From Oculina patagonica (taxonomy: Eukaryota), in NCBI RefSeq assembly GCF_052425735.1, contig NC_135759.1, positions 44,702,001-44,766,000 of the forward strand: DNA of 64,000 bases. The letters are read 5' to 3'. Below are positions 17,945-60,768 of this stretch, piece after piece. The notes beneath the pieces were generated by a model. That model saw only the letters and a list, made by a program, of their open reading frames with translations, did no database searches and was not told the origin of the DNA. Every line of letters begins with the position of its first letter. Within the stretch, counting starts at the first letter, position 1. A program made the translations under genes and the position numbers.

Positions 17945-18075
17945 TTAAACGCAAAGTTTACATGACTTTGGACAGTATGTGGCCGAGAAGTCAGGATGGA
18001 ACCAGCAAAAGTCCTCGGTAGCTCTCTTTTGACACATACGTGCGTGGACAGGGTCATCAACGCATGAAGCTGAAG
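17945..18075 (-). CDS. Exon: C-terminal ShK domain, copy 1
   Basis: SASCVDDPVHARMCQKRATEDFCWFHPDFSATYCPKSCKLCV*; homologous exons in copies 2 and 3. Confidence 0.85.
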
Positions 18076-21000
18076 CTGAACAAAAGAAAATGAAGAGATA
18101 ATGTGCTTATATTTAACTCGATATCACGAAATACACGTGCATTTAAAAATATTTACTATATAAAAATACAGTCGAAGCTCTCGTAAGCGGACACCCTCGG
18201 GACGCGAAAAAAGTGTCCGTAACTGGAGCTGGACGCTTACGAGAATGGTACTCGTAAGCGGCTACTAGAGGTGTTGGGGATAGATGGCCGCTTACGGGAG
18301 CTTTCCCAGCTAACAGTAACCAGACGGACGACAAAACAACCACTGAAATGTAGTCCTGTAATTACTGTAAAATCATTGTCACAAACGGCGATGTGAATTT
18401 GATTGATAATAACAAGATACGGAGGTTGTTAGTAGGATTTTCTTTCGGGTGTCCGCCTACGGGAGCTTAAAAACAAAGAAAAAGTCTAAGTCGCGGCCGC
18501 TTACGGGAATGTCCGCTTACGAGAATGTTAAAATACAGAGTTTGTATGGGAGTTAATACGGGGTTTCAGACAAGGTGGTCGTAAGTAGAGCTGTCCGCTT
18601 ACGAGAGTGTCCGGTAAGAGAGCTTCGGCTGTATGTAAAAAATTAATTACAAAACATTTACGATATTCATGTGTTGTCATTTGTGTCTAAAATAGTACTT
18701 TTCTCGATACTGTTATATCGTTGTCGTTACCCTGAAGTTGTAAATACGTTTATAAAGGTGAAGCTGTCTAGACTACCTAAGACTGTGCGTTCAACTTTAA
18801 CACGAAAAGACGTTCTCGATTAAAAAAAAAATATTTTGGCAGCAAACTTGGATGTTCATTTTGAGCTTGAATTGCGCCGGTGCTGCTGTATGGATGCGAT
18901 GCGTGGGGGTCAGAACTCCCACCGTTTACTGAGCGCCATGTGATAATAGTACATTTACAGGTTCTTTTGATATTCGCAGCCTGTAAAATGTTTCCTCTTT
19001 TGCACGCCCAGGAAACAATTCCGTTTACGTGTTTTGGGGGCCTTAAAGCCACGAAAATGTATCGTATGGATACTCAAACGTCCCATCAACTAAAACATAG
19101 CAGCTGTACGAGAAGCAGAAAACCAGAGAAAATAGGAAATACTTACGCGATAAAACTGTAGGTTTCGGTGGCGCTGTAAACATAATTGAAAAAAAGATTA
19201 TTAGAGAAAGATACGTCATATATAAAGTACTGCAACCGATAATAACAGTCTCTTTTGTACGCCCAGGAAACAATTTTGAAAAGCGTTTACGTGTTTTGGA
19301 GGGCTTTGTTTTAGTTGAGGGGGGTCCTTGACTCTTTTGCATTTCATCCTTTGGCCTTGTTTTTCTTAGCCTTAGCCTTAGCCATAAATTGTAATAAATT
19401 TTAAGCCAAGAAAACGTATCGTGTGGATACTTAAACGTCCCACCAACTGAAATATAGCACCTTTACAAGAAGCAGAAAACAAGAGAAAATAGGAAATACA
19501 TACTTGGTTGTTGTGGCGCTCCAGGTTTTGGCGGAGCTGTAAACACGAACGAAAAAAGATGATTACATAAAGAACGATCATGTATAAAGTACAGCAACCG
19601 AATATAACAGTGTTTACCCAGGGTCAGACTTCACCGCTCTTCCGTTATAATCGTCTTTGTCCCACTATTAACTTACTATTCCGCACTGCAGTGAATATTC
19701 AATATTAAATAAGATACAACAGTGGTATATCTTGCCGTCATATTCTTTTTGTTACTCAAATCTCCAAACCAAAAAAAAAAAAACATTACTCTCTGTATCA
19801 ACAGTGTCACTGCATGTCTGTACATGTGAGTACGAAAAAAATATTGATGTGTCAATTTACGAAGCTTGTTTCCGTAAAATACTAAGGGCGCTTTCCATTA
19901 GTCAGGACTGGCCATACAGTTTCTTTTGTTCTCAAACAAGCTTGATTTTCTCGAAATCTAGACTGACACTTGGTGTTTATTTTTTGATATGTTAAAGTTT
20001 AGTAGATTGACTAACTGTTGACGAAATTTTAGAAAAATCTGTAAGAGCGTTTTCAAGTAAATCAAGAATGAAATTTTCAATAAAACACCGTTTTACTATA
20101 AAATAGGCGCTTTACAATTGTTTCGTATTATTTGAACACAGTTACTCTCACTGAAATACAAATACTTACACCATCAAAGACCATTAACTAAAAGTGAAAG
20201 ACATTTTGCTTTAATTTGTTAAAATATATCGACTGCCGCTTGTAGGAAACTATAAGAAAATACCAAAAACTTCATTCTTGATTTACTCTAAAACGCTCTT
20301 GCAGATTTTCCTAAAATTTTGTGTATAGGTAGTCAATCTACAATACTTGAACATATAAAAAAATGAATACCAAGAGTCAATCTAGATTTGGAGAAAATCA
20401 AGCTTGTTTGAGAACAAAAGAAAACGTCAGTGGTTGCTATGGTAACCTTTGTGACAAAGTGACGGGTAAAAAATTAAAATTTGGTCTTATATGATCATTA
20501 TGGTGTATTTTGGCAAAAAATGAAGATTGGCTTCCTAGATTATTTCAATTTTCAAAACAACCCCCCTTCGGCTAAAAAAACTACATCGAGCCTCCTTAAG
20601 CCATCTTTATTATTATTAGAACGTCAAGTTCATAAATACTTATCAGGCTGCAACTGATACTTACTACAGTCATTTTGGCTTAGGTAGTCAAGTATTCCCT
20701 GCAAGTGCTCTTGGATGTTCTTAGCATCCACAACATCCTCGTCACGGTCTGTCATCAACCTTAATCTACGTTTATTCTCTCCAGTGCCAATACCAACAGC
20801 CAGCACACGAACACCTGCGTCTCGTAAGGGCTTGGAGGTTTGCTTCAAGCCCCTGGCTCCGCTTGACTGGACACCGTCAGTTAGTATTATATCAATCTTA
20901 TACACACCCTGTCTGGCCGCTGGTAAGACTTGATTAACTGCAACTTTTAGGGCCTTGTCGATTCGTGTTCTGCCGCCCATTCTCGGTAGTTGCTGCACAG

Positions 21001-23608
21001 CATCTTGAAATTTGTCCACCGTCTCGTATTGTCCAAACTGAGCTACCTGTGAGGCTGAGGGGCCGAAAAGAACCATTGCTGCTCGATTTTTACCTGGTGC
21101 TTTATCCAAAGTCGTCACTAATTTCTTGACTACTTCCTTTGCATCGTTGAATTCTGATTCAACACTGCCTGAAGAGTCCACGATAAATACCACATCCGTT
21201 GGACACGCACGAGTAACTGAAAAGTATGAAAGTTATAAGAACTTAAAATCAGTTTAACGCTTGTCAGGAGTCTTTAGTTTTAAATTCGGGAATTGGGTAA
21301 TATTTATTTACTACTAGAATAAAGCTAAGTGCTTCATTGGGAAACATAGTAACAATAAGGAATAGAATATTAAGAATTGAACTTGAATAGAATAAATTTG
21401 TAGAGCGCTCAACTCGGAGAGGAGCAGTGATAATAATAAATCAAAAGTAGGAAGATTTCAATTTATCGTTTTTTGCGACAACACTGTTTCGTGTGATCAA
21501 AGGATGACCACACTCATCAGGCAATATCAACGAATGACCGTTAGAATACATAAACTGGCAATAAAAGGCTAACTTAAGGTTGCTATGCGATATAAAAACA
21601 GTTGCTATGATATATAAAAACTATAGGGTTATAAAAAAACAGAAATTGCGTATACTAAAGATTGCGTTACTTAATCACAAACATTAAGAATTATATATAT
21701 CATGTAAAATTATAGTAACTTTAGTAACTTAAGTAAAAAAAAATTGGCATTTTTTTCAAGTTTATCATTTGTAATCCGTCTTAATCTTCGTCAGTCGAAA
21801 CCAACCTAATTTATTTTCGGGTTTTGTTATTCCTTTGGTGTTTTTCTATGTAGAAAACTGTTATTTCGAGGTTTCCTTCAATTTATCTAATCAGAAAAAA
21901 AAATGATTTGAAATACCGTGACATTTCCCCGCATTAAACTTGTTTAGTGTTGGAAACGTTCAAAACAAATTTTCATGACTTAATATGTGACACCAAACAA
22001 ACAATTCAAAGCGAAATTGTTCTTTCAGTGTGTGACCTTTTAGCATTGTACACTACTCACGATCTATATTAATCGAAATGGGACTTATCTTCACTAGTTT
22101 CAATCTTTTTCTTGTTTGTCCATCAGCCTACTTTTGCTGTGTTGCATCGACTATTTTCACAATCGAGGCTAAGACTTTTCTGGCATTTTCCCAATCGAAA
22201 CTAAGATTATAGGACAAATTGGACTGCAAAAAAGGAATTTGTAGCCGCCCTTACCCTGTCCTGGTCCAGGACCTTCTCTACCGAACCCTATACGCTAGTT
22301 GTTCTAGCTTCCCAGGGGAAAGCAAAGAAACAGTAACTTGAAAGAAAATCGACTTACTAGGGCATTTCTGTGCATTGCACGAAATAGTCTTTACAGCAGG
22401 TCCCCATCTGTTACAATTTCTTCCACCGTTAGATGGCGGGGGATTGGTGCAGGTTCTTTTTACTGTTTGTATCCCAACTCCACACGTCGCACTGCACTCA
22501 GACGCAGGAGACCAATCAGTGTACTTTCCGTCTATAGGAGCTAAGAAAGAAAGAAGAAAAAAATCAATTCATAGTCAACAACATCGTTTGAAATCACATC
22601 CACAGAATTGTCCATGCCCCTTTCCACGAAACTGTACATAATAGCGTTGCCCTAGCGTCTAAAGTAAGTGAACAATAACTTAGATTAGTAGAAACTCAGC
22701 TGTGTTCTTTTGGAAATCTGATTGGTTCTTCCACTGTTTTCTATTTTAACAATAGAGTGTTTCTGTCGAGGAACTATCGGCTGATTCCGCGGATTTGATG
22801 TTCTTAAAACAAATAGTAGCCCGAGAAGCGAAGCTTCGAGGATTGCATTTTAGAACATCTCAGGGAACAGACGATGTTCCTCCATTGTTCACACTAAATT
22901 TTCCCCGCGCACATAACGAGATCGTGAATTATTTTTACTTTTCAGAATAAAAAACTCAATTGAGAGCCGAAATTTAACAAACGAAACAAAACCAGACAAG
23001 AAACCCACGAAATGCAGTGAATTTGGTTGGTGTTTTTTGTCTGCAGGCACGCTTGTTTACAAAAAAAAGTCACGGGCGGGCACTATCGATCCGGGCATTT
23101 TTCTCGGGAGGGCACTATGGGCTGTTAGCATAACCACACTGACCTACTATTGGTAATCGCGCAATCTGATTGGCTACACAGGTGCCTACTATCGATCCGT
23201 AGAAGGCTCTCGGAGCGCGCGCGTAGTCTTCGCGAATTTTATCAATCAAAACCTTCAATAAATCAATCTAGCGATATCGAGTTTAATGATCGGTCAGTGG
23301 GTATGCAACAAAGAGGCCGCTCTCGGTTCTACCGGCTTTGATAGTGGCTCGGGGCCGCCCCCGCCAACTATCAGCCGGTAGAAACCTCGAGCTGCCGTCT
23401 AATTGTTAAATAGTGCCCTCCGGCGGAGGGCACTATCGCGTCACGTGTTCAATTTAAACCAATCAGAATCGGAGAAAATTTAGTGGTGAACTATAATCGC
23501 CGATAGAAAACAGTCGCGCGCGCGAGTAGCTTTTTAAGTGGTAAATTTTCTTAATTTTTATCTTCAAAGTGCACAATATTGTAGGTTTTGGACTACAATC
23601 CTTTAGAT

Positions 23609-23644
<36 letters not shown>

Positions 23645-26600
23645 TTGCTCATAGAAAACTCGGGCTCGTAGTCTAACTGTTAAATAGTATTGACTTACTT
23701 GGGCATCTCCCTACATTGCACGAAATAGTCTTTTCAGCAGGTCCCCATCTGGTGCAATTTCTTCCACCATTAGATGGCGGGGGATTGGTGCAGGTCCTTC
23801 TTAATGTCTGGATTCCAATTCCACACGTCACACTGCACTCAGACGCCGGAGACCAATTAGTGTATTTTCCGTCTACAGGAGCTATGAAAAAGAACGAGAA
23901 CACTTCAGTTATATTGTAACATAGCCGCATGCTTACTGCTGTGGAATGGAGCTTAAAAGCCCATTCGCTAGGCATCTTATAGATTTTACGAAGACACTAA
24001 AAAACAATCAGTGTAATGTTCCTTCCTTTTAAATTCGATCAGTGTTCGCGTTATATCTATTCATCTATCTATATATATATTTGTTTGCTTGTTAGTTTGT
24101 TACATGAATTCTTTAATTTCAACCCTGTACCATTATAATATTTCTATCAAGATTTTCTTTTACAATCCAAACTTACCACAGACGAACTCTTTAAAATCTT
24201 CATAAAGCCTGTTCGACAGGACTGTAAAATTGCTATAAAGAACAACTTTTCCTTTTTTACCAGCTGTCTGTTTCATTTTGTCCTCGCTCTGCGCCGCGCC
24301 TGGGCCAATTCCAATAACCTTGATAGTGACATTTTTAGCCTGCGTTAAATAAATGGTACAGCATTTTAGAAAGCATTTGATAATGAGGGTTGCGCAAAGC
24401 ATTTTCTTCAGATGGAGCAGGGCATCTTGAAGGAATAATAATTAGCTTTCATAACACACATCAGTCCTAAATGCTGCCGTTTGCCGTTTGGCGTTCGTAC
24501 GCGGAAATAAGAATTTGGAATTTTTTCTTTATTTTTATGAGGGATTACTTTGACAATTCCATAAAAAGGAAACAAAATGAAAGGCAAGCTCGTTTGTCGT
24601 TTGCCTTATAACGTCATGCTTAATCTCTCTCATATTGATCACAATTACCTCGGGGTAAGTTTTAAGGGTAAAATTTGCAATATGTAGAAGGCTTTCTTCC
24701 CGGGGGGAGGACTCCTCGTCGTCTCGCTTAGGGGTGTAAATTTCGGGTTTTTGGTCCCATTCAGGGTGTTGCGGGCAAATCGCCAATAATTTTAGCCTTG
24801 AAGATCTCGTTTAGGGCTGCACACGAAGAAATGTACGAATATAAATTCTATTTTTTCGTATTTTGGTATCTTTTAGGGCACACAAAAAGCTCCAGCCAAA
24901 ACCAGATTAGTCTCTTCAAGGGGTGCTTTTCAAAATTTCCGACGAGCATCCCTTCCCCTTTTCAAATGGAAGTCTTCCAGGGGCTCAATAAAGAGGGTCT
25001 CAATGGGGTTAACCGTTAGCCGTAAAAAGGCCAAAACTTTAGCCGTTAGGCGTAAAAATTGGAAAATTTTAACCGCTAGCCGTTAAATGTGTCAACCGTA
25101 AAAATCGGCCAGTAATAACAAATAAACAAGACTAGATCACTTCATCGTACCAGAATGGTCCTTAGACCTAAAAAATGTTTTTCAATAATGGAAATTAATT
25201 TTTAACTTCTGTTAACCGTTATGGAAATAAATTAACCGTTAGCCGTAAAAAAATCCATTATTTTAACCGTTAACCGTAAAAGCCATTACCCCCATTGACA
25301 CCCTCAATAAAGGGTGTTTCACAATTAACAAAATCATGTAAAATTAAGTAGAAGTACCTCCAAATCTTTTGTCAATTTCGCAAACGGAATTTGCGGTTCA
25401 TTATCCCAATCCGCAATATACGGTATTCCATCGGTAAAGATAAGCATAACATTAATGGCATTTGGTCTGTCTCCACCTTCCTCGTCAAACAACTTTGTCA
25501 ACGCCAGATTCTCAGCCATATCTGTTCGAGTTCCCTCTTTTTCTGGAACAACTTTTAATGCGTCAGCCACGCTTCTCTTCAGGTTCGTTGCATTGTGGTA
25601 ATTCGTGTTTGAAAAGTTGTGGTGGACTGTTGCACGATCACCAAAAGTGACAAGACCAAAGTGATTACCAGCTGTAGACACACCAAGTTTGTCCACCAAC
25701 GCATTGACGATATCTACCAGGTGATGGCGGTCAGCTTCCTTCATACTTTGAGATATATCACCCAGAATGGCGATATCCATGATTTGATGACAGTCATCTA
25801 AATTGAATAAGAAATCACCATTGTCTGATTCGTTGGGCGCTATTATAAGAAATATTTCCTGTACTGGCCTTTTTGACAAAAAATGCCACTGAGCAAGTTT
25901 TATCAAGCATCGGATTAGTTCGTCCACTGTGAGTTAGAGAGCTGCCTCAAAACAAGATATATTCTCTTACACATGAAAAACTTTTTCTTTTTCTTTTCTT
26001 TATGTCATATAGAGGCGGTTTTAGTGTACAGTCTCAATTAATGGAACTGTGATAGCTGGCAAAAGGTTAAGCTAGCTTTTATAATTAATTGCGACGATTA
26101 TTTTGATCTCTGACGGTAAACCCAGGTCGGCAAAGGTTTGCTTTCAGCTAATAGCAAAGCAAAACTAATGGTTTTGACTTTTCATATTTGTGTATCAAAC
26201 CCCTCTCGCCGACAAAAAAAGATAAAAGAAAAATTATTTTTGACCGCAAAGTTGGACAAATACCCACATTTCACGTATTGCATGCGGTGCATGTAAAGCA
26301 GAAATCATTACCTTCATCCGATGATGCCAAGTCTCTCCGCGGTAGACCTGAAATGAATAACAGCGTGTCAATGGGGCATTATCGTAGCAATCAGTTAACA
26401 GCAAAAGCAAGCAAAGTTTAATCATCAGAACATCTGAAGGATTGCGCGTAAACACGACATCAAGTCAAAATACATGTACAAGGCAGATTTTTTTGAAAAA
26501 ATATCCACTGTTGAACTTGTAAACGGATTTTCATTTTCACTGTTTTTCCACCTTTTGCTCCTACGTTCCGGCCCGTATCCGCTTAATAAATAATTTCCTT

Positions 26601-26825
26601 TCATAAAGTTGGCAGAACATACACTACTGCCATTTATACGTTGACAATGACAAAATATTGTGTACTTATTATCCAACATTAAGTAAGCCAGTCATCGCTC
26701 TCTCAAAACTTCATTGAACTTATCATTATCAAAACAGAAAAAAAAACCGGCAATACAAACTTACCATAACTATCGCATATTAAGAGAAAAACGAGGAAAA
26801 GGAACGAACAAGTAAAGTTTCCCAT
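17945..26825 (-). CDS. Secreted VWA-TSP1-TSP1-VWA-ShK protein, copy 1 (about 590 aa, 9 coding exons)
   Basis: Exons 26825-26765 (signal), 25797-25358 and 24339-24177 (VWA1, MIDAS DISQS/T/TDG), 23881-23699 and 22540-22358 (TSP1), 21216-20665 (VWA2, DSSGS/T/TDG), 19536-19504 and 19173-19147 (Pro-rich), 18075-17945 (ShK plus stop). All GT-AG; phases are compatible; 1773 nt in total. Confidence 0.85.
18169..18631. mobile_element. Tc1/mariner(pogo)-type MITE in an intron
   Basis: TA|CAGTCGAAGCTCTC..GAGAGCTTCGGCTG|TA; absent from the homologous intron of copies 2 and 3. Confidence 0.8.
19147..19173 (-). CDS. Exon: 27-nt Pro-rich micro-exon, copy 1
   Basis: TTTACAG|CG CCA CCG AAA CCT ACA GTT TTA TCG C|GTAAGT. 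Confidence 0.7.
19504..19536 (-). CDS. Exon: 33-nt Pro-rich micro-exon, copy 1
   Basis: TTTACAG|CT CCG CCA AAA CCT GGA GCG CCA CAA CAA CCA A|GTATGT. Confidence 0.7.
19915..20595. mobile_element. Truncated DNA transposon (Kolobok-like end) with a long internal hairpin
   Basis: About 19921-20070 is inverted at about 20270-20422; ends GAGCCTCC|TTAA; not in copies 2 and 3. Confidence 0.5.
20665..21216 (-). CDS. Exon: VWA domain 2, copy 1
   Basis: CPTDVVFIVDSSGSV..GGRTRID..IILTDG..VLAVGIG. Confidence 0.92.
21379..21682 (-). mobile_element. 304-bp hammerhead-bearing insertion (retrozyme / solo PLE pLTR-like)
   Basis: ATTAAGAATT duplicated at 21369-21378 and 21683-21692; a single ATTAAGAATT at the empty site in copy 2 (about 45986). 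Confidence 0.7.
21466..21533 (-). ncRNA. Type I hammerhead ribozyme
   Basis: TCGTT gata TTGC-CTGATGA-GTGTGGTC atccttt GATCACAC-GAAA-CA gtgt TG-TC^GCAA aa AACGA: full core, 8-bp stem II, 3-bp stem III, bulged stem I, GUC site. Confidence 0.85.
22358..22540 (-). CDS. Exon: TSP1 repeat b, copy 1
   Basis: PIDGKYTDWSPASECSATCGVGIQTVKRTCTNPPPSNGGRNC..CNAQKCP. Confidence 0.88.
22681..23675. mobile_element. Nested non-autonomous insertion(s), Crypton-like, between the TSP1 exons
   Basis: Absent in copy 2, where the intron is only 155 nt; ends TAGATTAG..CTCGTAGTCTA; internal hairpins. Confidence 0.6.
23699..23881 (-). CDS. Exon: TSP1 repeat a, copy 1
   Basis: PVDGKYTNWSPASECSVTCGIGIQTLRRTCTNPPPSNGGRNC..CNVGRCP. 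Confidence 0.9.
24177..24339 (-). CDS. Exon: C-terminal part of VWA domain 1, copy 1
   Basis: CAG|AKNVTIKVIGIG..FKEFVC G|GTAAG. Confidence 0.85.
24993..25305. mobile_element. MITE with 6-bp TSD
   Basis: TIR GAGGGTCTCAATGGGG/CCCCATTGACACCCTC; AATAAA duplicated; empty site in copy 2. Confidence 0.8.
25358..25797 (-). CDS. Exon: VWA domain 1, copy 1
   Basis: DCHQIMDIAILGDISQSM..EGTRTD..MLIFTDG. Confidence 0.9.
26765..26825 (-). CDS. Exon: signal peptide, copy 1
   Basis: MGNFTCSFLFLVFLLICDSY G|GTAAG; conserved at 60708-60768. Confidence 0.8.
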
Positions 26826-37613: not shown

Positions 37614-37658
37614 TGACTGACGTTTCGACAACCTGAGCGGAAGTCATCTTCAGAGTCA
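37614..37658 (-). ncRNA. Minimal hammerhead ribozyme of the host PLE
   Basis: TGACT-CTGAAGA-T-GAC..GTC-GAAA-CG-TC^AGTCA. Confidence 0.8.
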
Positions 37659-37872
37659 AGTGAAAAGTTGTTGTCAGTCGATGATGTTATAAGTCTGGTC
37701 CGTTGAAGCTGATTGGTCAGTTAAGCCGTGATGTTATTGGCTGTAAGACTCGTGTAAAGTTAGTCATCAGTAATCTTTGGATGTTGTCCTTCAGTAGCAT
37801 GTTCAATAAAAAAGTTAAAAGTTCAACTGAGGCCTTACACTACTGTGTTAAAAAGTTTTAAAAAGTTTTAAG

Positions 37873-37909
37873 ATCCAAGCTTTCGCCGATCTACGGCATC
37901 ATCAGGGAT
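37873..37909 (-). ncRNA. Minimal hammerhead ribozyme (3' pLTR)
   Basis: ATCC-CTGATGA-T-GCCG tagat CGGC-GAAA-GC-TT^GGAT. Confidence 0.8.
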
Positions 37910-40722: not shown

Positions 40723-40793
40723 GTTCAATAAAAAAGTTAAAAGTTCAACTGAGGCCTTACACTACTGTGTTAAAAAGTTTTAAAAAGTTTTAA

Positions 40794-43018: not shown

Positions 43019-43149
43019 TTAAACACAAAGTTTACATGACTTTGAACAGTGTATGGCCGAGAAGTCAGGATGGAACCAGCAAAAGTCCTTGGTAGCTCTG
43101 TTTTGACACATACGTGCGTAGACAGGGTCATCATCGCATGGTTTTAAAG
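43019..43149 (-). CDS. Exon: ShK domain, copy 2
   Basis: LKPCDDDPVYARMCQNRATKDFCWFHPDFSAIHCSKSCKLCV*. Confidence 0.8.
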
Positions 43150-48437: not shown

Positions 48438-48840
48438 TTGGGGTTATATATATTTTTAAAGAAAGCACTCATCTCCATTTCTCTCTCTACTCGATTCCGC
48501 GCTTTTGCCTTTTTGTTTTTTGTCTACATTCCTCCGAAAAATCTCGAAAAACATTTATCAAAATCAACCGCGGCCACTGCAACTTTGTTCAAATACTGGA
48601 ACGAGTGCTTCAATTGGCTAAACACGGCCAGACGTAAACAATTTTCTTGTGCTCACTCAGTATGCGATGTTTCGTTTTCACACGAACGCAAGCACAAGCG
48701 CAAGCGCAAGAAAAGGAAAAATTTTGATCCTTGTGCTTGTGCTTGCGCTTGTGCTTATGCTTGTGTCGAAGCCGTTTTCACTATGACATAAGAGCTGTTA
48801 TGCTTGCGCTTGTGCTTGCGTCGCTAGTGAATACCAGGCT
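48361..48840. mobile_element. Left-truncated copy of the Harbinger-type MITE at 35891-36573
   Basis: Matches 36082-36573; left TIR removed at the junction with the VWA exon. Confidence 0.85.
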
Positions 48841-49792
48841 TTAGTTGCGACCTTTGTAAAGAAACATTAGTTCTTTGATATGAAATTCCGGCGGCATCCG
48901 ATCACAAAACAAATGTTGACATTGCGGGAAAATTCCGCGGCCTCACAAAGCAAATGTTGACATGGCGGGAAAAATATTGACATGGCGGGAAAATTCGGCG
49001 GCCTCAGAAAGCAAACACGCATGGAATGCAGTTCTCCCCCTGTAGAATTATCTCGTGTCGTCATGACAACGTCGTCATGACGACACGAGACAAAAAGTGT
49101 ATAAGTAAAGTATTATCTACGAACAATCAATTTTGTAATTAGACTGACTGTTTAGCAGCTAAGTCGATCCAAATCGAGTCCCATGAAAAGCCCAGAGCCC
49201 CTGCCTTCAAGCCGACTTGCCGCAGTCCACCAATTCTGATTTTACTTTAAATTTAGCCAATGATGTCATAAGATGTATTTTTACGGGTTCTGTTTATATA
49301 CCACAACATTGAATAATGCCGATATTTTTTTAATCATAACTGTTTCATTTTATATTGCACGAACACTGTGCCCACGTTTAGTAACCCCCTACAGGCTAAT
49401 CTTATAATCCTAAGTATTATTTTTGTGTAATGTTGCTAAATTGGGTATATGTATAAAACAAATTGCAGGGCATTGCACATCACAGTAAATGAAAATATCA
49501 TGGGTAACAAACATTTTGTTTTCAGTTAAAATCGTAACAAATCTCGGAAAAGACTAGTATAGAGCCTTAAAATAACATATTCCTAAGGTTTTTTTTTTAT
49601 CTGTCAAGCTTGGTCTAAATAGAGACATTTAGCTTCAGGTTATCTGCTATAAACGTCAAACCACAAACGTCTAGGAATCACGTGCTCAGGCCCCGAGGTC
49701 ACGTTTGAGGTTTTCAACGCACGTTTTCGACAGCAAGAGGTAGCTTTTCACGTTGGTGATTTCCCTCAAGGTTTCTGCTCTTTTATTTTTAA

Positions 49793-51584
49793 AGTAAATG
49801 GTTTGAACCCAGGAGTATCAGTAGTTCGTATAGTGTGATCGTCCGGGTGAGAGTAGTTCTGAGAAGAACTGTTGTTGGTGACTGACGTTTCGACAACCTG
49901 AGCGGAAGTCATCTTCAGAGTCAAGTGAAAAGTTGTTGTCAGTCGATGATGTTATAAGTCTGGTCCGTTGAAGCTGATTGGTCAGTTAAGCCGTGATGTT
50001 ATTGGCTGTAAGACTCGTGTAAAGTTAGTCATCAGTAATTGGTCAGTTTCGATCCGTCTATTGTTAGTCTAATTAAGTCGTTCTGTTCCGTCTATTGTTA
50101 GTCAAATTAAGTCGTTCTGTTGGCGGTTCGTTTGTCGCTTCTGTTTACGTCGTGAATAAGTCGTTTGTAAGGTGCCGGTAGTTGTTGACATCTGTTGATA
50201 GACGTCTATTCTAAGTTTGTGTACCAGCTTTCCAGAGTCAGTCGTTGAAAATAGTTAGTACCGTAGGTTAAGCATTCAGCAGAGTCCCAGTCGATTTTGT
50301 GTTTAGTAAGTCGGTGGTGTTCAGAAATGTGATTGTTGACATCACCATTTCCGGTCGCTCGTTTGTGTTCAGTCAGTCTCGTGGTCAAGTTTCTACCGGT
50401 CTCTCCGATGTAGGAGGCCTGGCAGTCGGAGCATTTGATCTTATAAATCGCTCCCTGTGTTTTGTTAGGTTCGTCCCTGTCTTTAACGTTGGTCAGTAAA
50501 TGTCGTAACGTTGTTATAGGTTTGTGAGCTACACGGATATTGTAGGGTTGTAGGATCCGCGCAATAGTCTCAGAAGTGCCCTTGATGTAGGGTAAAGTCG
50601 CTGTAGTAACAGATGTCAGATTTCTGTCAGTTTCAGTAGTTAATTCTGTGAGTGTTGCGTCTAATAAAGTCAGTATTGTAGTTGTTCTTGTGGAAAACGC
50701 GGTCAAGGTATTTGTTTTCGTCAGATAAACTGTCTGGTGTGTCACAAACTAGTTGCGCTCGTCTCGTCAAAGTCTTGATAGTCGTAGCTTTGTGGGAAGT
50801 CGGGTTGTAGGATGTTTCGTCCAGTAATCTGTCGGTATGCGTCGGTTTTCTGTACACTGTAGTTCGTATTTCGTTGTTTTCGCGGCTTACCAGACAGTCA
50901 AGAAAAGGAAGTTTTCCGTTTTCTTCGATCTCCCTGGTAAACTGAATGTCGGCGTTCTGTTCGTTTAGGTGTTTGTGAAAGTCGTCGATTTCGTCTTTGT
51001 GTACGGCGGTAAAAGTATCGTCAACGTAGCGTAACCAGAGCGGTATCGTTTGTCGGCTAGTTGCAAGGGCGCGTTCCTCGATGTTTTGCATCACAATTTC
51101 TGCGACAACAACGGAAACCGGCGACCCCATGGCTGTTCCGTGCAACTGCTTGTAGCGTTTTCCGTTGTACTGAAAGTAAGTCGATGTAAGGCAGAGGTTC
51201 AGTAAGTCCATAATGTCTTCAGTCGGTAGCGGTAATGTAACAGTAGATTGTTGAATAGCGGTCTCGGTGCACTGTAGAGCCAATTGAAGTGGAATACTGG
51301 TGAACAGTGATTTCACATCAAAAGACACAAGTTTGTAGTCGCCAGGTATCTGTACAGTCTTGATGGTGTCTGGATTGGTCTGTAAGAGGTTGCAGTATAG
51401 TCGTCAGGTATTTAGACAGTTGGTTCGTAGGGGACCCACAGAACGAGACTATGGGTCGCATCGGTATACCCGGCTTGTGTAGTTTCGGTAGTCCGTAAAG
51501 TTTCGGTGGTTGCGGTACTGAGCACCGCAGTCGGTAGTAACGTTGATTGTTAAAAGCGTCGGTCTTTTTAAGCGCAAGTAGTTT
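49793..51584 (-). mobile_element. 5'-truncated Penelope/Poseidon-type PLE (RT plus GIY-YIG, frameshifted)
   Basis: ORFs 50633..51328 (RYVDD) and 50206..50745 (AIYKIKCSDCQASYIGETGR..EH); same insertion site as 37527-41582. Confidence 0.92.
49879..49923 (-). ncRNA. Minimal hammerhead ribozyme of the PLE
   Basis: Identical to 37614-37658. Confidence 0.8.
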
Positions 51585-53016
51585 TTAGTTATCTCACGTA
51601 TTGACGCTATACATATCGGAAGTAGTTATTTGTCTTGACACAGAGAAAAATTCAACTAGAAAGAGTGCAGATTGAGCATTTTGTCTTCTTTTGAAAAACA
51701 AGCACTTTTATATGTCGCAAATCCAATATGGCGGCGGAAAGCCAGCAAGTAAATTCTCGGAATCTCACCGTATATTTCTCAGAAAACATCCAGTGGAACG
51801 GACGAATGTTTTGAAGGCGAACCAGTCAAATTTCAAGAAGGATGTGAGCGTTAAGGTAAGCTTCTTCTTTCCCAGATACCGACAAAACAGAGCATTTTTT
51901 GAGAAAATTGTATTTATCATGAAAGAAAAAGTAAATTTTGTTTTGCTGTGAATCTTGTCGAGCAGTTTGTGTGCTTTTCTTCCTGTCGCCTTCGACAACA
52001 GTCGATAAAGAAAGCGGTGTTAGACCGGATCACTGGTAATTTTGAATTTTAGAATTTGACAAGCCATCTTTCCATTTTAGTAAACTTCTTTTCTACGCGA
52101 ATTTGCTCGAGGTTGAAGACGTCTAGCTAAACCGGTAGAGTTCATGATACCTCAAACGCCAAACGACTAACCTTAAACTGCCGTTTGCGGTTTGCCGTTA
52201 AAGTGAAAAACCTGTAGCTAAATATATATTTTGTTAAACTTCTAGCAGCTTTGTTAGTCTTGTTAAACAGCTCAGAAAAACAAGTTTGAGTTTATTCACT
52301 TTATTGAACTTTTTAAATCATCTTTTAATAGTTTACATGTGTTTTACCTAGAACAGCCCTTAGCGCCCCTCATATCCTAGCACTTTACAGCACTTGTTAC
52401 ATAATGAATAATGTCTTATAACACCTTGATTTACTTTATTTTAGCTTTGTTATCAATTAATTTATTGGCTTCCGCGTTACTTCATTGCTTCGACGCATCC
52501 CACTCAGCTTCTGAAACAATACATACAAAATACATTAAAAACAACTAGTATGTATTCCCATAATCCAAACCTGCAGATTAAGATAGGAGAAAAAAGAAAA
52601 ACAGCTATTTAACACTAGGGAAAACTATTCAAAAGGCCGCTGGCGCAAGTCATGATCAATGCTGATGGAAAGTTTTAATACCGCGACGTTTTGACTGCTG
52701 TACTGCTAGTATTCATCAGGCGACGAGGTTTACGTGCCGATATTGGTGCATCCCATAATGTCTAAAACAATAGAAATCAAAATGGCCGTCGTTTCGGTAA
52801 AAAGGTCTATTTCTTTTTCAAGGACGTTTCATGTACATGTTTGTCTTACACCTTCTTGCTTGTTAGCAAACGTTTGTTGCTAGCTGAAGAATGGGTGTGG
52901 CAAATATTGGCGAAGTGGTATCGCCAGTTCACTCAGCATATTCCTTTTACCCATGCTCCGTTTGAGCCATTACAAATTATGGTGATTAAATAAATAGATG
53001 AAGTACACAACTTACC

Positions 53017-53147
53017 TTAAACGCAAAGTTTACATGACTTTGAACAGTATGTGGCCGAGAAGTCAGGATGGAACCAGCAAAAGTCCTTGGTAGCTCTCTT
53101 TTGACACATACGTGCGTAGACAGGGTCATCAACGCATGGTTTTAAAG
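53017..53147 (-). CDS. Exon: ShK domain, copy 3
   Basis: LKPCVDDPVYARMCQKRATKDFCWFHPDFSATYCSKSCKLCV*. Confidence 0.82.
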
Positions 53148-56100
53148 CTAGCAAAAGAAAATGGAGAGATAATATGTTTATATTTAACTCGATGTCATGA
53201 AATTTGCGTGCATTTTAAAATATTTACGATATAAAAATATTTAACAAAATTAATTAAAAAATATTTTGGCAATCACGAAACGGAAAATACATACCTGGTA
53301 AAAATACAGGTTCTGGTGGCGCTGTAAACACAAAAGAAAAAAAGATGAATACAGAAGGATAGATCATATGTAAAGTATAGCAACCGGGTGAGACTTCACC
53401 GCCCTTTCGTTTCAATCGTCTTTGTCACTTACTATTCACCGCAATGAATATTCAGTATTTAACAATTATTCCACGAGCGCGCGTTGAACATGAGATGGTA
53501 TCGATCTCATATCCAACAAGCGCGAGTGGAGTAATTGTTTTATTAAAAACGCCCAAAGAATTGCAATATTTGAGCTCCCAAGCTGTTTTCGTTGACGCGT
53601 ATCGCCTACCATATTTGTGGTCAATGGTATATGAGCTAAGATACCATTGCCTGTTAACCAATTAAAACTGCACTGCATATCTGTACATGCGAGTAGGAAA
53701 AAATATTGATGTGTCAATTTACGAAGCTTGTCAGCTTGTTTCCGTAAAATACTAAGGGCGCTTTCCATTAGTCAGAACTGGAAGGCCAGACCGGTATATT
53801 CGAGAAGAAAATTCCGTTTTAGGTCAAATTTTTCCTCTCAAATCAGTCAGTGCATAAATATGATACACTGTCGTGGTGGATTTGTGGAAGAATCTCGTTT
53901 AAAAGGGACCACTTAGCATTCAAAAACCACCGGCCGGCCAGTTCTGCCTAGTGGAAAGCTCTTGCAATTTGCAGATGGCCATTTACGAATAAACTTTTCT
54001 GGTGTTTGGAGGCAGTAATTGAAAGTTTGTTGCCCTATAGCGCGGTACCCTGACATAAAATTTATACATTTATACGTTTGCCTGCGGAGACAACATGGCG
54101 TCGCAAAGACCAGAATCCAAACTCTGAAGTTTTTGAGGTTAATTAAACTTGTGAACGTGATACTAGACTCAGAACTGGTTGATATCGCATTTTCCATAGT
54201 TACTTTCCAAAGTTTAATATGAGTATATAAACAGGAGGTCCTCACATCAGATAAGAGGATAAATAGAAATAAAACTTTTGTCGCGTCTTTTTTCTTTTTA
54301 CGCGGTCTGCAAGTTGGTGGTCTGGAGCCGAGTAAATTATTGGCGGTCAGCTTGAACGAGGACTGGAACCGAGAAATATTCGGAACCGCTCGTATCTCTT
54401 AGTTTATGACAAGGGATGAAACTGTAAATGACAGCCTTCAAATTTGACAAAAATTCGCAGCCAAATATCTGTCTAAATTTTACTATACTTACTCAGCAGA
54501 CAGGAGAAAGGTTAAACAAGACATCCATGAGCTTATTTTGCCCAATTGTTTCTAAGGTATACAATATTTTGGCGTCGTCTTTGATTTGGTTCCATTTTCC
54601 TACCAGTTGGGGGTCACGGAAGTAAGAATTTCGATTCATTGATTGACAGATTAATGGCGGAAGTAAATGATATTGTTTGTTCTGATTGGTGCTTTTCAAT
54701 TCCGGAAGTTTTTTCTTTTTGTTTAGGAATTAGAATGATCGACTGAATATTTAATTTAGTTCTCAGATGCGATTTGTAAAATATGCAAAGATTTAGTGCA
54801 CGTGTAGAACGGTGGTTGCTAATTGAACCTCTTGCTAGGCGTCGCTCATCGTTGCCGATGAAACACATCGGCCGCGGACAAGATTTAATTTTTTTTACCT
54901 ACCATTCTGTTATTTTGAATTTACTTGTCGAGGAAAACACCGCCATTTCTCAAACTCATCACCATTAAGCCAAATCGAGAATTGCAAATCAGAAGGTCAC
55001 AAAACAAAAGGCGTAATTAGCTGAACACTGCCTGCACATTCTATGCAAAACAACAACGTGAATGGATAAATTCAGGCTATACTTTTTACAGAACGTGTTA
55101 ATTTACAGAAATTTTTATTCAGATTTGAACACTGCTTTTAATATCCAACTACAGGGCGAAAAGCATGATTGACTAGTTTCTTTCAATTTTTTTAAACTTT
55201 ACGCTTCCTTCAACTCAAGGCCGCCGCCGAAGTTTTTAAGCAAACTATATGTAAGGATTTAAAGAACTTTAGAGTTTTGGGGTGGTATTGAGACTATACC
55301 TGACAACTCGGGAAGACATTAAGCCATTTTGCACGCATTGCTGTCTCTTCCGCAAGTTACATTTTTACTTCCGGTTGTAAGATGGTATTCCACTTCCGTG
55401 ACCCCCAACTGGCAGAAAGATCGAACCATGAAAGCTGAGAGTTTCACCCCTTGTCACTATATAGCACTCGTAGCTTGATCGGTTCGTCCCGAGAATTAAT
55501 ATTTACGAATGTTCCTCCCATCCCAGACCCCACACTTTTCTTGATTTCAGACCTCCAACCTGCTAGACCGAGTATTAAACATTCAAAATGGCCGATTTAC
55601 GTAAAAAACGCGACGATAACAAGTAAGAAGTATTTTTTTATTTATCCGGGTATTTATCCGGGCTCCCTGTGTATATATCGTTAATAGAAGGCGTCTTAAT
55701 TACTTTTAGTTAACTGTCAATATAAAGCCATCTCTATTACATGCGTCAAGTTTATAACTACTTACTGCAGTAATGTTGGCTTAGGTCGTCAAGTATCCCC
55801 TGCAAGTGCCCTTGGATGTTCTTAGCATCCACAACATCCTCGTCACGGTCTGTCATCAATCTTAGTCTACGTTCATCCTTTTTAGTGCCAATACCAACAG
55901 CTAGCACACGAACACCTGCGTCTCGTAAGGGCCTGGAGGTTGGCTTCAAGCCCCTGGCTCCGCTTGACTGGACACCGTCAGTTAGTATTATATCAATCTT
56001 ATACACACCCGGCCTGGCAGCCGGTAAGGCTTGATCGATTGCAATTTTTAGGGCCTTGTCGATTCGTGTTCTGCCGCCCATACTCGGTAGTTGCTGCACA

Positions 56101-59100
56101 GCATCCTGAAACTTGTCCACTGTCTCGTATTGTTCAAACTTAGCTACCTGTGAGGCTGTGGAGCTGAACAGAACCATGGCTGCTCGATTGTTACCTGGTG
56201 CTTTATCCAAGGTCATCACTAATTTCTTGACTACTTCCTTTGCATCGTTAAATTCTGATTCAACACTGCCTGAAGAGTCCACGATAAATACCACATCCGC
56301 TGGACACGCAGGAACTGAAAAGTAAGAAAGTTATAATAACTTATAATCAATTTAACGCTTTTTAGGAGTCCTTAGTTTTGAATTCGGGAACTGGGTTATA
56401 CTTATTTTCTATAATAAAGCTTTATTGGGAAACATAATAACAATAAGGAATAGAACATTAAGAATCATATTTATTATATAGCCGCGAGTGTTTTACTGGA
56501 AAATAGACCACTCGTAAAATTCATACGAAACTGCATCCGGGACTGTAGTGGTGTATTTTCCATATCCTCACTAGGGTGGATATCGATGACGTCATTTCCC
56601 GCCTTTGCACGGTTGTTTGTGCAAGGCTGCCAAACGCCGATTGGAAATGGTGAGCTATCGATTCTTCAAGTTTAATGATGCCAAAATAAAATGTTGTACT
56701 GAGGAGCAGGAAAATGCTAACACGAAGAAGAAAACTTCATATGACTTGAAATTATTTAAAAGAGCTTCTTGCTTGTGGAGAGTCAGACGAAATGAGGGAA
56801 AATCAAGAAATTCCAGCTGCCGAACTGCAAGACTTCGCGATCAGAAATCAGAAAAGCGGTGAGTTTTAGCAGAAACAGATTTCAAAACGGCGAATTATTT
56901 ATTGTCAGTGACATTGATGAAAGCTAATAAACAGACTGTTTTTACAATTACGTTATACATCTTCTGAAAGCTTCAGTTCGCGAAATTTTGCCTTTCAGTT
57001 TGGCAATTTGCCCAATTGTTATATTTAGCCGTGCTCGTGTTTATGTTCTAACTTTTACTTCATGCATGATTTTTGTCTAAATAAAAAAAAGAAAATTACA
57101 CGGAGGCTTGAAGATATGAATTTTATTTTCTCGTGGTAAAAGCAATATTTTGCGAATGAGCGCAGCGAATGAGTAAAATATTGCTTTTACCACTCGAAAA
57201 TAAAATCCATATCTTCGCGCCGCCGTGTAATATCCTCTATATATATAACGTAAAATTATAGTAACTTTAGTAACTTAAGTCGAAAAATTGGCAATTTTTT
57301 CAAGTTTATCATTTGTAATCCGTCTTAATCTTCGTCAGTCGAAACCATCCTAATTTATTTTTGGATGTCCTTTGGTGTTTTTCCATGTTAGAAAACTGTT
57401 ATTTTGAGGTTTAATTCAATTTTTAGCTAATCAGAAAAATGACTTGAAATACCATGATATTGCTCCTTTAAGCAATACATTTGTTTAGTATTGGAAACGT
57501 TCAAAACAAATTTTCGTGACTTGATACGTGACACCAAACAAACAATTCAACGCGAAATTGCTCTTTCAGTGAGTGACCTTTTAGCATTGTACACTACTCA
57601 CGATCTATATTAATAAATATTATATTATTATTATTATTAAATTATTATTATTATTATATTGATCGAAAATAGGATTTATCTTCACTAGGTTCAATCTTTT
57701 TCTTGTTTGTCCATCAGAATACTTTTACCGTGTTGCATCCACTATTTTCACAATCGAGGCTGAGATTTTTCACGCATTTTTCCAATGGAACTAAGATTGT
57801 AGTACAATTTGGACTGCAAAAAGGGATTTGCAGCCACCCCTGCGCCTTCCTGGTCCAGTACCCTCTCTACCGAACCCTATACAGTATCGTTGTTCTAGCG
57901 TCCCAGGGAAAGAAAGGAAACAATAACTTGAAAGAGTATCGACTTGCCAGGGCATTTCTGCACATTGCACGAGATAGTCTTTACAGCAGGTCCCCATCTG
58001 GTACAATTTCTTCCACCGTTAGATGGCGGGGGATTGGTGCAGGTTCTTTTCAGTGTTTGTATCCCAACTCCACACGTCGCACTGCACTCAGACGCCGGAG
58101 ACCAATTAGAGTAGTTTCCGTCTACAGGGGCTAAGAAAAGGAACGAGAACACGTCAGTTATATTGTAACATAGCGAGACGTTTACTGCTGTGGAATGGAG
58201 CTTAAAAAGCCCATTCGCTAGGCATCTTATAGATTTTAAGAAGACACTTAATTACAATCAGTTTAATGTTTCTTCCTTTTAAATTCTATCAGTGTTCGCG
58301 TTATAACTATTCATCTATCTATGCACCATCATAATATCAAGATTTTCTTATATGTAACAATCCCAACTTACCACAGACGAACTCTTTAAAATCTTCATAA
58401 AGCTTGTTCGACAGGACTGTAAAATTGCTATAAAGAACCACTTTTCCTTTTTTACCAGCTGTCTGTTTCATTTTGTCCATGTTGTTCGCTGCGTCTTGGC
58501 CAATTCCAATAACCTTGATAGTGACATCTTTAGCCTGCGTTAATAAATGGCAGCGCATTTTAGAACGTATATCATAATGAGGGTTGCGCAAAATACTTTC
58601 TTCGCGAAATTTAGAGAAAGCAGGGCATCTAAAAGAAAAATCATTAGCTTTCTTGAATTGACACACATCAGTCCTCGATGCTGCCGTTTTCCGTTGGACG
58701 TTCGTACGAGAAAATGAGTGGTTTTGTGTTTGTCGTGAATTTGAATTTTTTCTCTATTTTTTATGAGGGATTAATTTGAGAATTCCATGAAAATGAAACA
58801 AAATGAAAGGCAACCTCGTTTCTCGTTTGTCGTTTGCCATATTACGCCATGCTTAATCTCTCTCATATTGATCACAATTACCTCAGGGTTCGTTTAAAGG
58901 GTAAAACTTGCAATATGTAGGGGTGTAAATTTCAGATTTTTGGTCTCATTTAGGGTATTTCGGGCAATACAGCAAAAATTTTAGCCTTCAAAGTCTCGTT
59001 GTTCGAATAAATGTACGAATGTAAATTCCATTTTTCTTTATTTTGGTATCTTTTAGGGGACAAGAAAAGCTCCAGCCAAGCTCAGATTGCACTCTTCTTT

Positions 59101-60768
59101 TCATAGTTTTCAACGAGCATCCCTGCCCCTTTCAAATGGAAGTCTCCCAGGGGCTCAAAAAAGGGTGTTTCACAGAAGGTAAAATCAAGTAAACTTAAGT
59201 AGAAGTACCTCCAAATCTTTTGTCAATTTCGCAAACGGAATTTGTGGTTCCTTATCCCAACTAGCAATATACGGTATTCCATCAGTAAAGATTAGCATAA
59301 CATTCCTGGCATTTGGTCTGTCTCCTCCTTCCCTGGTAAACAAATCGTTCAACGCCAGATTCTCAGCCAAATCTGTTCGAGTTCCCTCTCTTTTTGGAAC
59401 AACTTTTAATGCATCAGCCACGCTACTCTTCACGTTCTTTGCATTGTGGTAATTCGTGTTTGAAAAGTTGTGGTGAACTGTTGCACTATCACCAAAAGTG
59501 ACAAGAGCAAAGTGATTGGCAGCTGCAGACACACCAAGTTTGTCCACCAACGCATTGACGATATCTACCAGCTGATGGCGGTCAGCTTCCTTCATACTTT
59601 GAGATATATCACCCAGAATGGCGATATCCATGATCTGATGACACTCATCTAAATTGAATAAGAAATCAACATTGTTCTGTATCTTTGCAGCATACGCGTA
59701 TACTTGTTGCGCGTACTCTTTAAATTAAAAATAAATGCGACAAAAAAAAACCGAATCACCAAGGAAAATATTATAAGAAATATGATAAGAAATATTTCCT
59801 GTACTGCCACTGAGCAACTTTTTATCAAGCAAGTTTTATCATGCAAGCTCACTAGTTCGTCCACTGTGAGTTAATTACACTGAAAAAAATGAGAGAGCTG
59901 CCTCAAAACAAGATATATTCTCTTACACATGAAACATACAAAAACTAATACAAAAACTTATCGTTTTCTTTTGTTTATGTCATATAGAGGCGATTTTAGT
60001 GTACAATTTCCGTTAATGGAACTGTGATAACTAGCAAAAGGTTGAGCTAGCTTATCTCTTTTTTAATTGCGACGATTATTTTGATCTTGGACGGTAACCC
60101 CTGGTCGGCAAAAGTTCACTTTCAGCTAATAGCAAAGCACAGCTAATGGTTTTGACTTATCATATTTGTGTTTTAACCCTTTTTGCCGACAAAAAAGATA
60201 ATGGAAAATTAATTTTGATCGGGAAGTTGGACAAATACCCACAATGCACGTATTAAATGCGGTTCATGTAAAGCAGAAATCATTACCTTCATCCGATGAT
60301 GCCAAGTCTCTCCGCGGTAGACCTGAAATGAATAACAGCGTGTCAATGGGGCATTAGCGTAGAATCAGTTAACAGCAAAAGCAAACAACGTTTTATCATC
60401 AGAACATCTGAAGGACTGTGCGTAAAACACCACATTAAGTCAAAATACATGTACATGCAAGGTAGATTCTTTTTAAAAAATATATTTTGTTGAACTGAAG
60501 AATGGATTTTCGTAATCTGTTTTCCATCTTTTGTTTCCACGTTCCGTATCCGCTAAATAAATCATTTGCTTTCATAAGGCTGACAGAACATACCACTGCC
60601 AGTTATACGTTGACAATGACATAATATTGTGTATTAAGTTAGCCAATTATCACTCTCTCAAAACGTCATCAAACTTATCATTATCAAAACAGAAAATACA
60701 AACTTACCATAACTATCGCATATTAAGAGAAAAACGAGGAAAAAGAACGAACCAGTGAAGTTTCCCAT
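53017..60768 (-). CDS. Secreted VWA-TSP1-VWA-ShK protein, copy 3 (about 517 aa, 7 coding exons)
   Basis: Exons 60768-60708, 59648-59209, 58534-58372, 58130-57948 (GC donor), 56314-55766, 53321-53295, 53147-53017; 1554 nt open. Confidence 0.82.
54228..55675. mobile_element. Non-autonomous insertion with internal inverted repeats (Crypton-like)
   Basis: Absent in copy 2; CCAGTTGGGGGTCACGGAAGT (about 54603) inverted at about 55392; TA-rich ends. Confidence 0.55.
55766..56314 (-). CDS. Exon: VWA domain 2, copy 3
   Basis: ORF 55758..56294; DSSGS MIDAS. Confidence 0.9.
56467..57243. mobile_element. Crypton-like non-autonomous insertion
   Basis: Absent in copies 1 and 2; terminal hairpin around GCGAATGAGCGCAGCGAATGAG; decayed 'EEQENANTKKKTSYDLKLFK' peptide. 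Confidence 0.55.
57948..58130 (-). CDS. Exon: single TSP1 repeat, copy 3
   Basis: PVDGNYSNWSPASECSATCGVG..CNVQKCP G|GCAAGT. Confidence 0.85.
58372..58534 (-). CDS. Exon: C-terminal part of VWA domain 1, copy 3
   Basis: AKDVTIKVIGIGQDAANNMDKMK..FKEFVC. Confidence 0.85.
59209..59648 (-). CDS. Exon: VWA domain 1, copy 3
   Basis: ORF 59185..59631; DISQS MIDAS. Confidence 0.9.
60708..60768 (-). CDS. Exon: signal peptide, copy 3
   Basis: MGNFTGSFFFLVFLLICDSY G|GTAAG. Confidence 0.8.

Follow-up and report, generated by a model that had tools for sequence, protein, structure and literature searches.

The skeletal matrix of Acropora millepora contains coadhesin, which, like the proteins named coadhesin-like, is secreted, is restricted to cnidarians and combines thrombospondin type 1 repeats (TSP1 or TSR) with von Willebrand factor A (VWA) domains. 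Coadhesin is not known to have its modules in the order VWA-TSR-VWA or to end in an ShKT domain. Combinations of TSR with VWA and of TSR with ShK have been described as cnidarian novelties, in a list that does not hold the VWA-TSR-VWA-ShKT architecture (Neubauer et al., 2017; PMC5446238). Here we analysed a window of 64,000 nucleotides of Oculina patagonica (contig NC_135759.1 of assembly GCF_052425735.1, positions 44,702,001 to 44,766,000 of the forward strand), whose minus strand carries three paralogous genes of this architecture in tandem, namely copy 1 (26825-17944), copy 2 (48363-43018) and copy 3 (60768-53016). Copies 1 and 3 are complete genes, and copy 2 is a 5'-truncated duplicate with its remaining exons still open. 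The initial annotation had placed three paralogues here, and its limits proved accurate: copy 3 has its ATG at 60768, and the ShK exon of copy 1 ends at 17944/17945. The array of this robust-clade stony coral probably consists of lineage-specific genes that encode a secreted multidomain protein, most likely a multivalent, cation-dependent matrix or adhesion adaptor. Below, positions are those of the window unless a contig is named, C2 being the contig that holds the window and C4 another contig of the same 529-Mb assembly.

Six-frame reading, comparison of the paralogues and inspection of splice sites resolved copy 3 into eight coding exons, and the spliced translation is identical to the RefSeq protein XP_078360443.1 ('matrilin-1-like isoform X1', 529 aa, O. 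patagonica), which was returned when proteins were searched exhaustively for matches to the VWA2 exon. The modules follow one another as signal peptide, short leader, a first VWA domain (VWA1), one or two TSR, a second VWA domain (VWA2), a Pro-rich hinge and the C-terminal ShKT domain. On the minus strand, exon 1 (60708-60768) provides the ATG and the signal peptide MGNFTGSFFFLVFLLICDSY, which is the N-terminus of the RefSeq protein, and ends in a phase-1 donor GTAAGT; exon 2 (60287-60322, 36 nt, phase 1-1) encodes LPRRDLASSDE. VWA1 is split between an exon of 440 nt (59209-59648; Pfam VWA E 1.2e-19), carrying the metal ion-dependent adhesion site (MIDAS) residues DISQS, T and D, and one of 163 nt (58372-58534), seen in spliced contigs of two public runs, X1 and X5. 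A single TSP1 exon (57948-58130, 183 nt, phase 1-1; Pfam TSP_1 37.2 bits) is followed by the VWA2 exon (55766-56314, 549 nt; MIDAS DSSGS, T and D; Pfam VWA E 6.6e-30), a Pro-rich mini-exon of 27 nt (53295-53321, PPEPVFLP) that is present in the RefSeq protein and that an X1 contig places after VWA2 and ahead of ShK, and the ShKT exon (53016-53147) with its stop TAA at 53017-53019. Intron-less contigs from three public runs (X1, X2 and X5, whose RNA label is a guess) join 58372 to 58130, 57948 to 56314, and 55766 via the mini-exon to 53147, so that both ends of the TSP1 exon and of the VWA2 exon are covered, and they leave the window sequence at 53016. A contig of X5 extends 547 nt upstream of the second VWA1 exon, a length that fits 440 + 36 + 61 + 10 nt. 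The donor of the TSR exon (57946-57947) is GC (CCTG|GCAAGT) in copy 3 and GT in all other copies, and use of the GC donor is seen in the spliced contigs. An N-terminus with a VWA1 exon from 59717 and no exon 2 was rejected on the RefSeq protein, the 36-nt exon 2 and the 440-nt length in the contig.

The domain content agrees largely with the initial annotation, which had proposed two VWA domains with intact MIDAS motifs (VWA1 truncated in copy 2), one or two TSP1 repeats and neither transmembrane segment nor catalytic domain. Pfam VWA (PF00092) matches both VWA regions with E-values of 1e-19 to 7e-30, and both domains in copies 1 and 3, as well as VWA2 in copy 2, score 69.6-105 bits against a gathering score of 23.8, the truncated VWA1 of copy 2 attaining 17.9 bits only. 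The MIDAS (D-x-S-x-S, T, D) can be read as DISQS, GTRTD and FTDG in VWA1 and as DSSGS, GRTRID and LTDG in VWA2. Every TSR exon matches Pfam TSP_1 (PF00090) with 32.7-37.2 bits (gathering score 21.6), with two repeats in copy 1, two in copy 2 and one in copy 3. All repeats contain six cysteines and CSVTCG or CSATCG, the former in TSR a of copies 1 and 2. They lack the W-x-x-W ladder of the C-mannosylation motif and have a single W (NWSPAS/DWSPAS) in its place; the TSR of this family is a reduced variant of the repeat. The 17 cysteines of copy 3 are distributed as one in the signal peptide and 2 + 6 + 2 + 6 by domain, and those of the mature protein pair within domains. No transmembrane segment was found, since beyond the signal peptide the hydropathy over 19 residues peaks at 1.09, and Pfam detected no enzyme domain. 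A secreted, non-enzymatic, non-membrane family built from adhesion-type modules, in numbers that vary among the copies, is thus borne out.

The C-terminal domain was proposed to be a toxin-type ShK module, of which the fold was supported and the toxin character was not. The ShKT (PF01549) spacing C-x8-C-x8-C-x10-C-x3-C-x2-C is present in all six loci examined, and the protein ends one residue past the last of these cysteines. ShK is the sole Pfam family matching the C-terminal piece and appears only when this piece is scanned alone, with 15.0 bits for Oculina, 13.5 for Stylophora and 21.2 for a Pocillopora damicornis relative at a gathering score of 20.9. A profile of seven family members has as its best PDB match 2MCR, the ShK-like peptide BmK1 of Brugia malayi (E 0.006), aligned end to end. 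An AlphaFold2 model of the domain (42 residues) has a predicted local distance difference test score (pLDDT) of 90, and when it was compared with 48,161 PDB representatives by an exhaustive aligner, nine matches reached Z >= 2, all of them ShKT folds: Acan1, BmK1, aurelin, the MMP23 domain, Nak1, ShKT-Ts1, AeTX-K, the CRISP C-terminus and OspTx2a (Z 4.7-2.4, root-mean-square deviation 1.8-3.3 A over 34-38 of the 42 residues). In absolute terms the Z values are modest, as a domain of only 42 residues would lead one to expect, and the weight lies on the exclusivity of the list. Foldseek gave no match to the PDB with the same 42-residue model. An ShKT fold of the C-terminal domain is thus supported by the cysteine spacing, the profile match and the predicted model. 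The Lys-Tyr pair by which BmK1 blocks channels aligns with Asp-Phe, and the loop between the third and fourth cysteine, WFHPDFSATY, contains no Lys; pore-blocking action is therefore not indicated, and block of the ShK kind would not be expected from this sequence. The Pro-rich linker ahead of the domain is encoded by two mini-exons in copy 1 (33 + 27 nt, about 20 aa) and by one of 27 nt in copies 2 and 3 (9 aa). It does vary in length, as had been noted, but the term stalk overstates a linker of 9-20 aa.

In copies 1-3 the stop codon TAA lies 1 nt ahead of a conserved GTAAGT donor, and the contigs show that this donor is used, which gives an intron in the 3' untranslated region and a non-coding last exon. 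For copy 3 this exon might correspond to a conserved block at approximately 52240-52570 (minus strand), for which 52570 and about 52510 are the candidate acceptors. The C4 paralogues read CGT CGA G at the same site, without a stop, and the frame enters the next exon, where a few residues are added (RRES in the GenBank/RefSeq models). Further coding exons past ShK were considered and rejected, the frame of the C4 paralogues closing 3-9 codons into the next exon, so that ShKT is terminal everywhere. Some transcript-like contigs depart from this model. Deeper contigs of X1 and X2 splice the mini-exon into the ShK exon at 53094/53093. The acceptor used there, GAGAG|CT, is in frame, and its use would delete the first two ShK cysteines. 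In the same contigs, VWA2 and the mini-exon are separated by 45 letters that could not be placed, and 6 of 79 nt are mismatched; the contigs may originate from an unsampled paralogue or allele. No convincing Pro-rich exon of 45 nt that would match the unplaced letters was found in the intron of copy 3. A contig of 808 nt from X1 runs from the 3' end of the TSR through a 440-nt stretch and the second VWA1 exon to the 5' part of the TSR (57948-59648), a circular layout that could represent a multi-module transcript, a back-spliced RNA or repeats collapsed when the assembly graph was built.

Copy 1 (26825-17944) has the exon set of copy 3 together with a second TSR and a second mini-exon, and its model encodes 602 aa. 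On the minus strand it comprises exon 1 with the signal peptide (26765-26825), the 36-nt exon 2 (26312-26347), the two VWA1 exons (25358-25797, Pfam VWA E 4.9e-19, and 24177-24339), TSR a with the CSVTCG motif (23699-23881) and TSR b (22358-22540), both matched by Pfam TSP_1, the VWA2 exon (20665-21216, Pfam VWA E 8.9e-29), mini-exon a of 33 nt (19504-19536), which lies within a duplicated unit of about 200 bp, mini-exon b of 27 nt (19147-19173), and the ShKT exon including the stop (17944-18075), with the six-cysteine pattern. Both mini-exons are contained in the RefSeq protein. The RefSeq isoform X4, XP_078360439.1 (541 aa), is copy 1 with TSR b skipped. Within a copy 1 intron (21369-21692), neither a hammerhead nor any other Rfam family was found at gathering score, the permissive E-value mode not being used. 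The sole Rfam match in the window at gathering thresholds is a tRNA (41.4 bits) at 15119-15185 on the minus strand, downstream of copy 1.

The most instructive aspect of the array is how its symmetric exon phases allow a gene family to alter module number in frame. All coding exon boundaries are in phase 1 except for a phase-0 junction inside VWA1, and the phase-1 cassettes with canonical splice sites were found in six loci. Each module is a symmetric phase-1 cassette, if the two VWA1 exons are taken as one, and unequal crossing-over, gene conversion, exon skipping and splicing between copies therefore stay in frame. The resulting proteins contain one to three VWA1 and zero to five TSR modules. 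A gene on C2, about 480 kb away and on the opposite strand, reads signal peptide-(VWA1-TSR)-(VWA1-TSR-TSR)-(VWA1-TSR-TSR)-VWA2-mini-exon-ShK, with three VWA1 and five TSR. Two more full copies are located on C4, 49 kb apart, and the RefSeq protein XP_078368664.1 (915 aa), with two VWA1-TSR-TSR blocks, joins the 5' modules of one C4 gene to the 3' modules of the other. The whole genome contains about six VWA2 exons of the family. A further mini-exon and ShK exon, the latter 85% identical to that of copy 3, adjoin a gap of 500 N at C2:45216458-45217273 (plus strand), about 13.6 kb upstream of the multi-module gene, and are probably the 3' end of another family member.

Self-comparison of the window showed that the units 36082-44229 and 48361-54226 are 97-98% identical, each consisting of flank, a Penelope-like retroelement with reverse transcriptase and GIY-YIG open reading frames, 3' flank, ShK exon and mini-exon. 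The upstream gene bodies (44229-48363 and 54226-59347) are only 84-93% identical, and copy 1 shares the 3' flank without the retroelement. Such a mosaic of identities would be consistent with repeated unequal crossing-over and gene conversion. The Penelope-like sequence 3' of copy 2 (37771-41600, minus strand), which lies in the recently duplicated unit 36082-44229 and may comprise more than one element, contains an extra 2.7 kb between direct repeats of 236 bp (37771-38005 and 40693-40928) and matches RVT_1 and GIY-YIG; the element 3' of copy 3 (50039-51600, minus strand) is shorter.

Copy 2 is the member of the array that calls for caution. It begins inside the first VWA1 exon, at 48363, 139 nt ahead of the end of that exon, so that its VWA1 lacks the D-x-S-x-S motif, and every later exon is open, giving 460 aa. 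On the minus strand, the partial VWA1 exon (48363-48225) is fused to flanking sequence (together 48225-48437), with a CGAT microhomology at the joint, and is followed by the second VWA1 exon (47397-47559), TSR a with CSVTCG (46973-47155) and TSR b (46635-46817), both matched by Pfam TSP_1, an intact-MIDAS VWA2 exon of 558 nt (45325-45882, Pfam VWA E 9.6e-28), the 27-nt mini-exon (43297-43323) and the ShKT exon including the stop (43018-43149), with the six-cysteine pattern. An in-frame ATG (48437) and a hydrophobic leader containing FFVVAFAFFV come from the flank at 48368-48437, where a TATA-like run precedes them by about 15 nt; this flank is also present unfused at about 36090-36160. Copies 2 and 3 are not each other's haplotypes, as the initial annotation had wanted to see checked, because their identity is mosaic (84-93% in the 5' two thirds) and their TSR number differs. 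That part of the question is settled, but the last modules of the opposite-strand gene about 480 kb away match copy 2 at 98-99% identity, in the introns as well, and copy 2 is thus a recent duplicate or possibly an assembly artefact. If the gene at C2:45.23-45.24 Mb had been placed in the array once more, as a haplotypic or collapsed copy, the window would hold two genes only. The extension of the identity to introns and the downstream retroelement, the abrupt start in mid-exon and assembly gaps at the distant locus all speak for such a misplacement. The microhomology at the junction argues against it, however, as does the flank on its far side, which is a 97.9% duplicate of 36082-37774, as a real tandem duplication predicts; moreover, the two loci are set apart by indels of about 600 bp and by their opposite orientation. 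We consider a misplaced copy rather unlikely.

Whether the family diversifies in sequence was addressed by pairwise Nei-Gojobori ratios of non-synonymous to synonymous substitution rates (dN/dS) among the six loci. These are 0.16-0.47 for VWA2 in all but two near-identical pairs, mostly 0.2-0.5 for the TSR and 0.36-1.0 for VWA1. The ShK exon exceeds 1 among the C2 copies, from only 8-13 substitutions, which are too few to judge, and lies at 0.37-0.72 against the C4 copies. Positive selection was not found by this pairwise comparison, the ShK exon offering too few changes. The description of the family as diversifying thus applies to module number but not to sequence, dN/dS being below 1 in VWA2 and TSR. 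Judged by these ratios, the family is constrained: the number of modules varies and the residues of the predicted binding faces do not.

The array genes are already machine-annotated in RefSeq, yet uncharacterised. All database names for the family are automatic (matrilin-1-like, coadhesin-like, cartilage matrix protein-like, collagen alpha-like), and the RefSeq label 'matrilin-1-like' is misleading for these genes, since it reflects VWA similarity only. The GenBank protein KAL9985800.1 (1463 aa) merges copy 3, retroelement open reading frames and copy 2 (43018-60768) and is an annotation artefact. No study of the VWA-TSR-VWA-ShKT architecture was found when the literature was queried by domain words, species and accession numbers, and a search for nucleotide contigs encoding the copy 3 protein returned no record; the initial impression that this is no named, characterised protein is upheld. 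Named relatives with VWA2, linker and ShKT were found only in Pocillopora damicornis, P. verrucosa and Stylophora pistillata, in searches limited by query length and shared words, by which absence from other taxa is not implied. The relatives in Stylophora include XP_022778417.1 and XP_022786692.1. One P. verrucosa gene has no TSR exon and no tandem neighbour within 10 kb, and a second has two TSR. More distant 'coadhesin-like' proteins of Oculina, Porites and Acropora share VWA1-TSR and end without ShKT, those of Oculina and Porites at 42-53% identity and with the ends ...CSD/CSE.

Assignment to a secreted adhesion or recognition family appears reasonable by analogy with the domain families. 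As adaptors, the proteins would engage acidic ligand residues, for example of collagens, through two MIDAS faces, as the VWA domains of collagen VI and mussel PTMP1 do; the TSR, whose CSVTCG/CSATCG motifs conform to the O-fucosylation consensus, might bind glycosaminoglycans or CD36-type scavenger receptors, and the ShKT domain may serve as a disulfide-stabilised terminal binding or capping module rather than a Kv-channel pore blocker. Several points weigh against this interpretation. The mechanism of adhesion is deduced from the domain families, and the Oculina ShKT domain stays below the Pfam gathering score. The contigs of X1, X2 and X5 deviate by 1-5% from the window sequence, so that alleles or close paralogues may be the source of some of them. 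Copy 2 may be a pseudogene or the artefact discussed above, and the relaxed constraint on VWA1, with dN/dS up to 1.0, could reflect partial loss of function in some copies. The proteins might instead be structural or venom-associated components of cnidocysts, with an ShKT tip that acts on channels of prey or predators or aids capsule assembly. Nematocyst proteomes typically show extracellular-matrix-type modules along with ShKT domains. The presence of ShK- and TSR-containing proteins in nematocysts has been noted (Neubauer et al., 2017; PMC5446238), the ShKT fold is supported, and the window contains another ShK-like six-cysteine pattern at 2153-2263 (minus strand), downstream of copy 1. However, a length of 529-602 aa and the possession of two MIDAS VWA domains are not toxin-like, and Asp-Phe stands where BmK1 has its blocking pair; we consider a cnidocyst role unlikely.

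A function in the skeletal organic matrix, or in attaching calicoblasts to the skeleton, would bring the family close in function to coadhesin and to the other VWA proteins that coral skeletons contain. VWA proteins have been reported to be the most prevalent adhesion class in the skeletal proteomes of O. patagonica and S. pistillata (PMC9532382), and the relatives, automatically named coadhesin-like, were found under a name in stony corals only. The supplementary tables of the same study, however, contain neither the Stylophora accessions of the family nor ShK-bearing VWA proteins, a weak argument that reflects a search by name and accession only, and we regard a skeletal function as doubtful. 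Very unlikely, in our estimate, is a soluble molecule that recognises symbionts or microbes or acts on them like an opsonin, in which CSVTCG-type TSR would engage CD36/SRB-type receptors and the variation in copies and modules would constitute a repertoire. The presence of CSVTCG in TSR a of copies 1 and 2, the variable module number and the occurrence of multi-module transcripts would suit it, as would the reports that TSR proteins promote symbiont colonisation of Aiptasia and that TSR+VWA and TSR+ShK are cnidarian novelties (PMC5446238); the low dN/dS of TSR and VWA2 (0.16-0.5), without a signal of positive selection, and the small number of copies speak against it. An extension of this idea takes the cassettes and the tandem and dispersed copies as a combinatorial system, in which read-through, splicing between copies, exon skipping and alternative acceptors generate a secreted VWA/TSR repertoire of varied valency and ShKT tips for the recognition of partners or microbes. 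Hints of it are the 915-aa RefSeq model spanning two genes, the contig running from TSR to VWA1 and the in-frame acceptor inside the ShK exon, and we hold it to be quite improbable. The matrix or adhesion adaptor stays our preferred description of the family, at the confidence given at the outset.

The present work provides a base-level description of a secreted, adhesion-type family of stony corals that is mislabelled 'matrilin-1-like' in public annotation. If it is true that the proteins sit in skeleton-forming, cnidocyst or symbiont-facing compartments, they would offer useful markers and candidates for adhesion or recognition. On present evidence, the array is an ordinary case of cnidarian extracellular domain shuffling and not a new mechanism.

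Among solved structures, the nearest to the array proteins are collagen VI alpha-3, mussel PTMP1, the TSR of thrombospondin-1, MIC2 and TRAP. With matrilin-1 (cartilage matrix protein), a secreted matrix protein, they share two MIDAS VWA domains, whereas the EGF modules between the VWA domains and the C-terminal coiled coil or oligomerisation domain of matrilin are replaced by TSR and ShKT; a Pfam scan of the whole protein at E <= 10 returned only VWA and TSP1 families and a weak, sub-threshold CDC37_C, with no EGF and no coiled coil. Collagen VI alpha-3, in its N-terminal VWA domains, is the best solved-structure match of VWA2 (E 1.8e-34), and PTMP1 of the mussel byssus, also a secreted adhesive protein with two VWA domains, is that of the VWA pair (E 6.5e-20). 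Compared with both, the array family has TSR and ShKT in addition and no triple helix, and no Gly-X-Y region is found in the models of 529-602 aa. The tandem of MIDAS VWA and TSR is shared with TRAP and MIC2, VWA1 and TSR aligning with TRAP in one stretch (query 32-264, E 2e-7) and VWA2 with MIC2; unlike these parasite adhesins, the array proteins are of animal origin, have neither transmembrane helix nor cytoplasmic tail, and possess a second VWA and an ShKT domain. The six-cysteine spacing and predicted fold of the latter recur at the end of MMP23 and of nematode astacins, among them the source of BmK1, and in free ShK-type toxins, whereas here the domain is neither protease-linked nor free and is fused to adhesion modules. 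The relatives of the array genes in Stylophora and Pocillopora bear the automatic name coadhesin-like, and the family belongs with the cnidarian secreted VWA/TSR proteins, here with an ShKT terminus.

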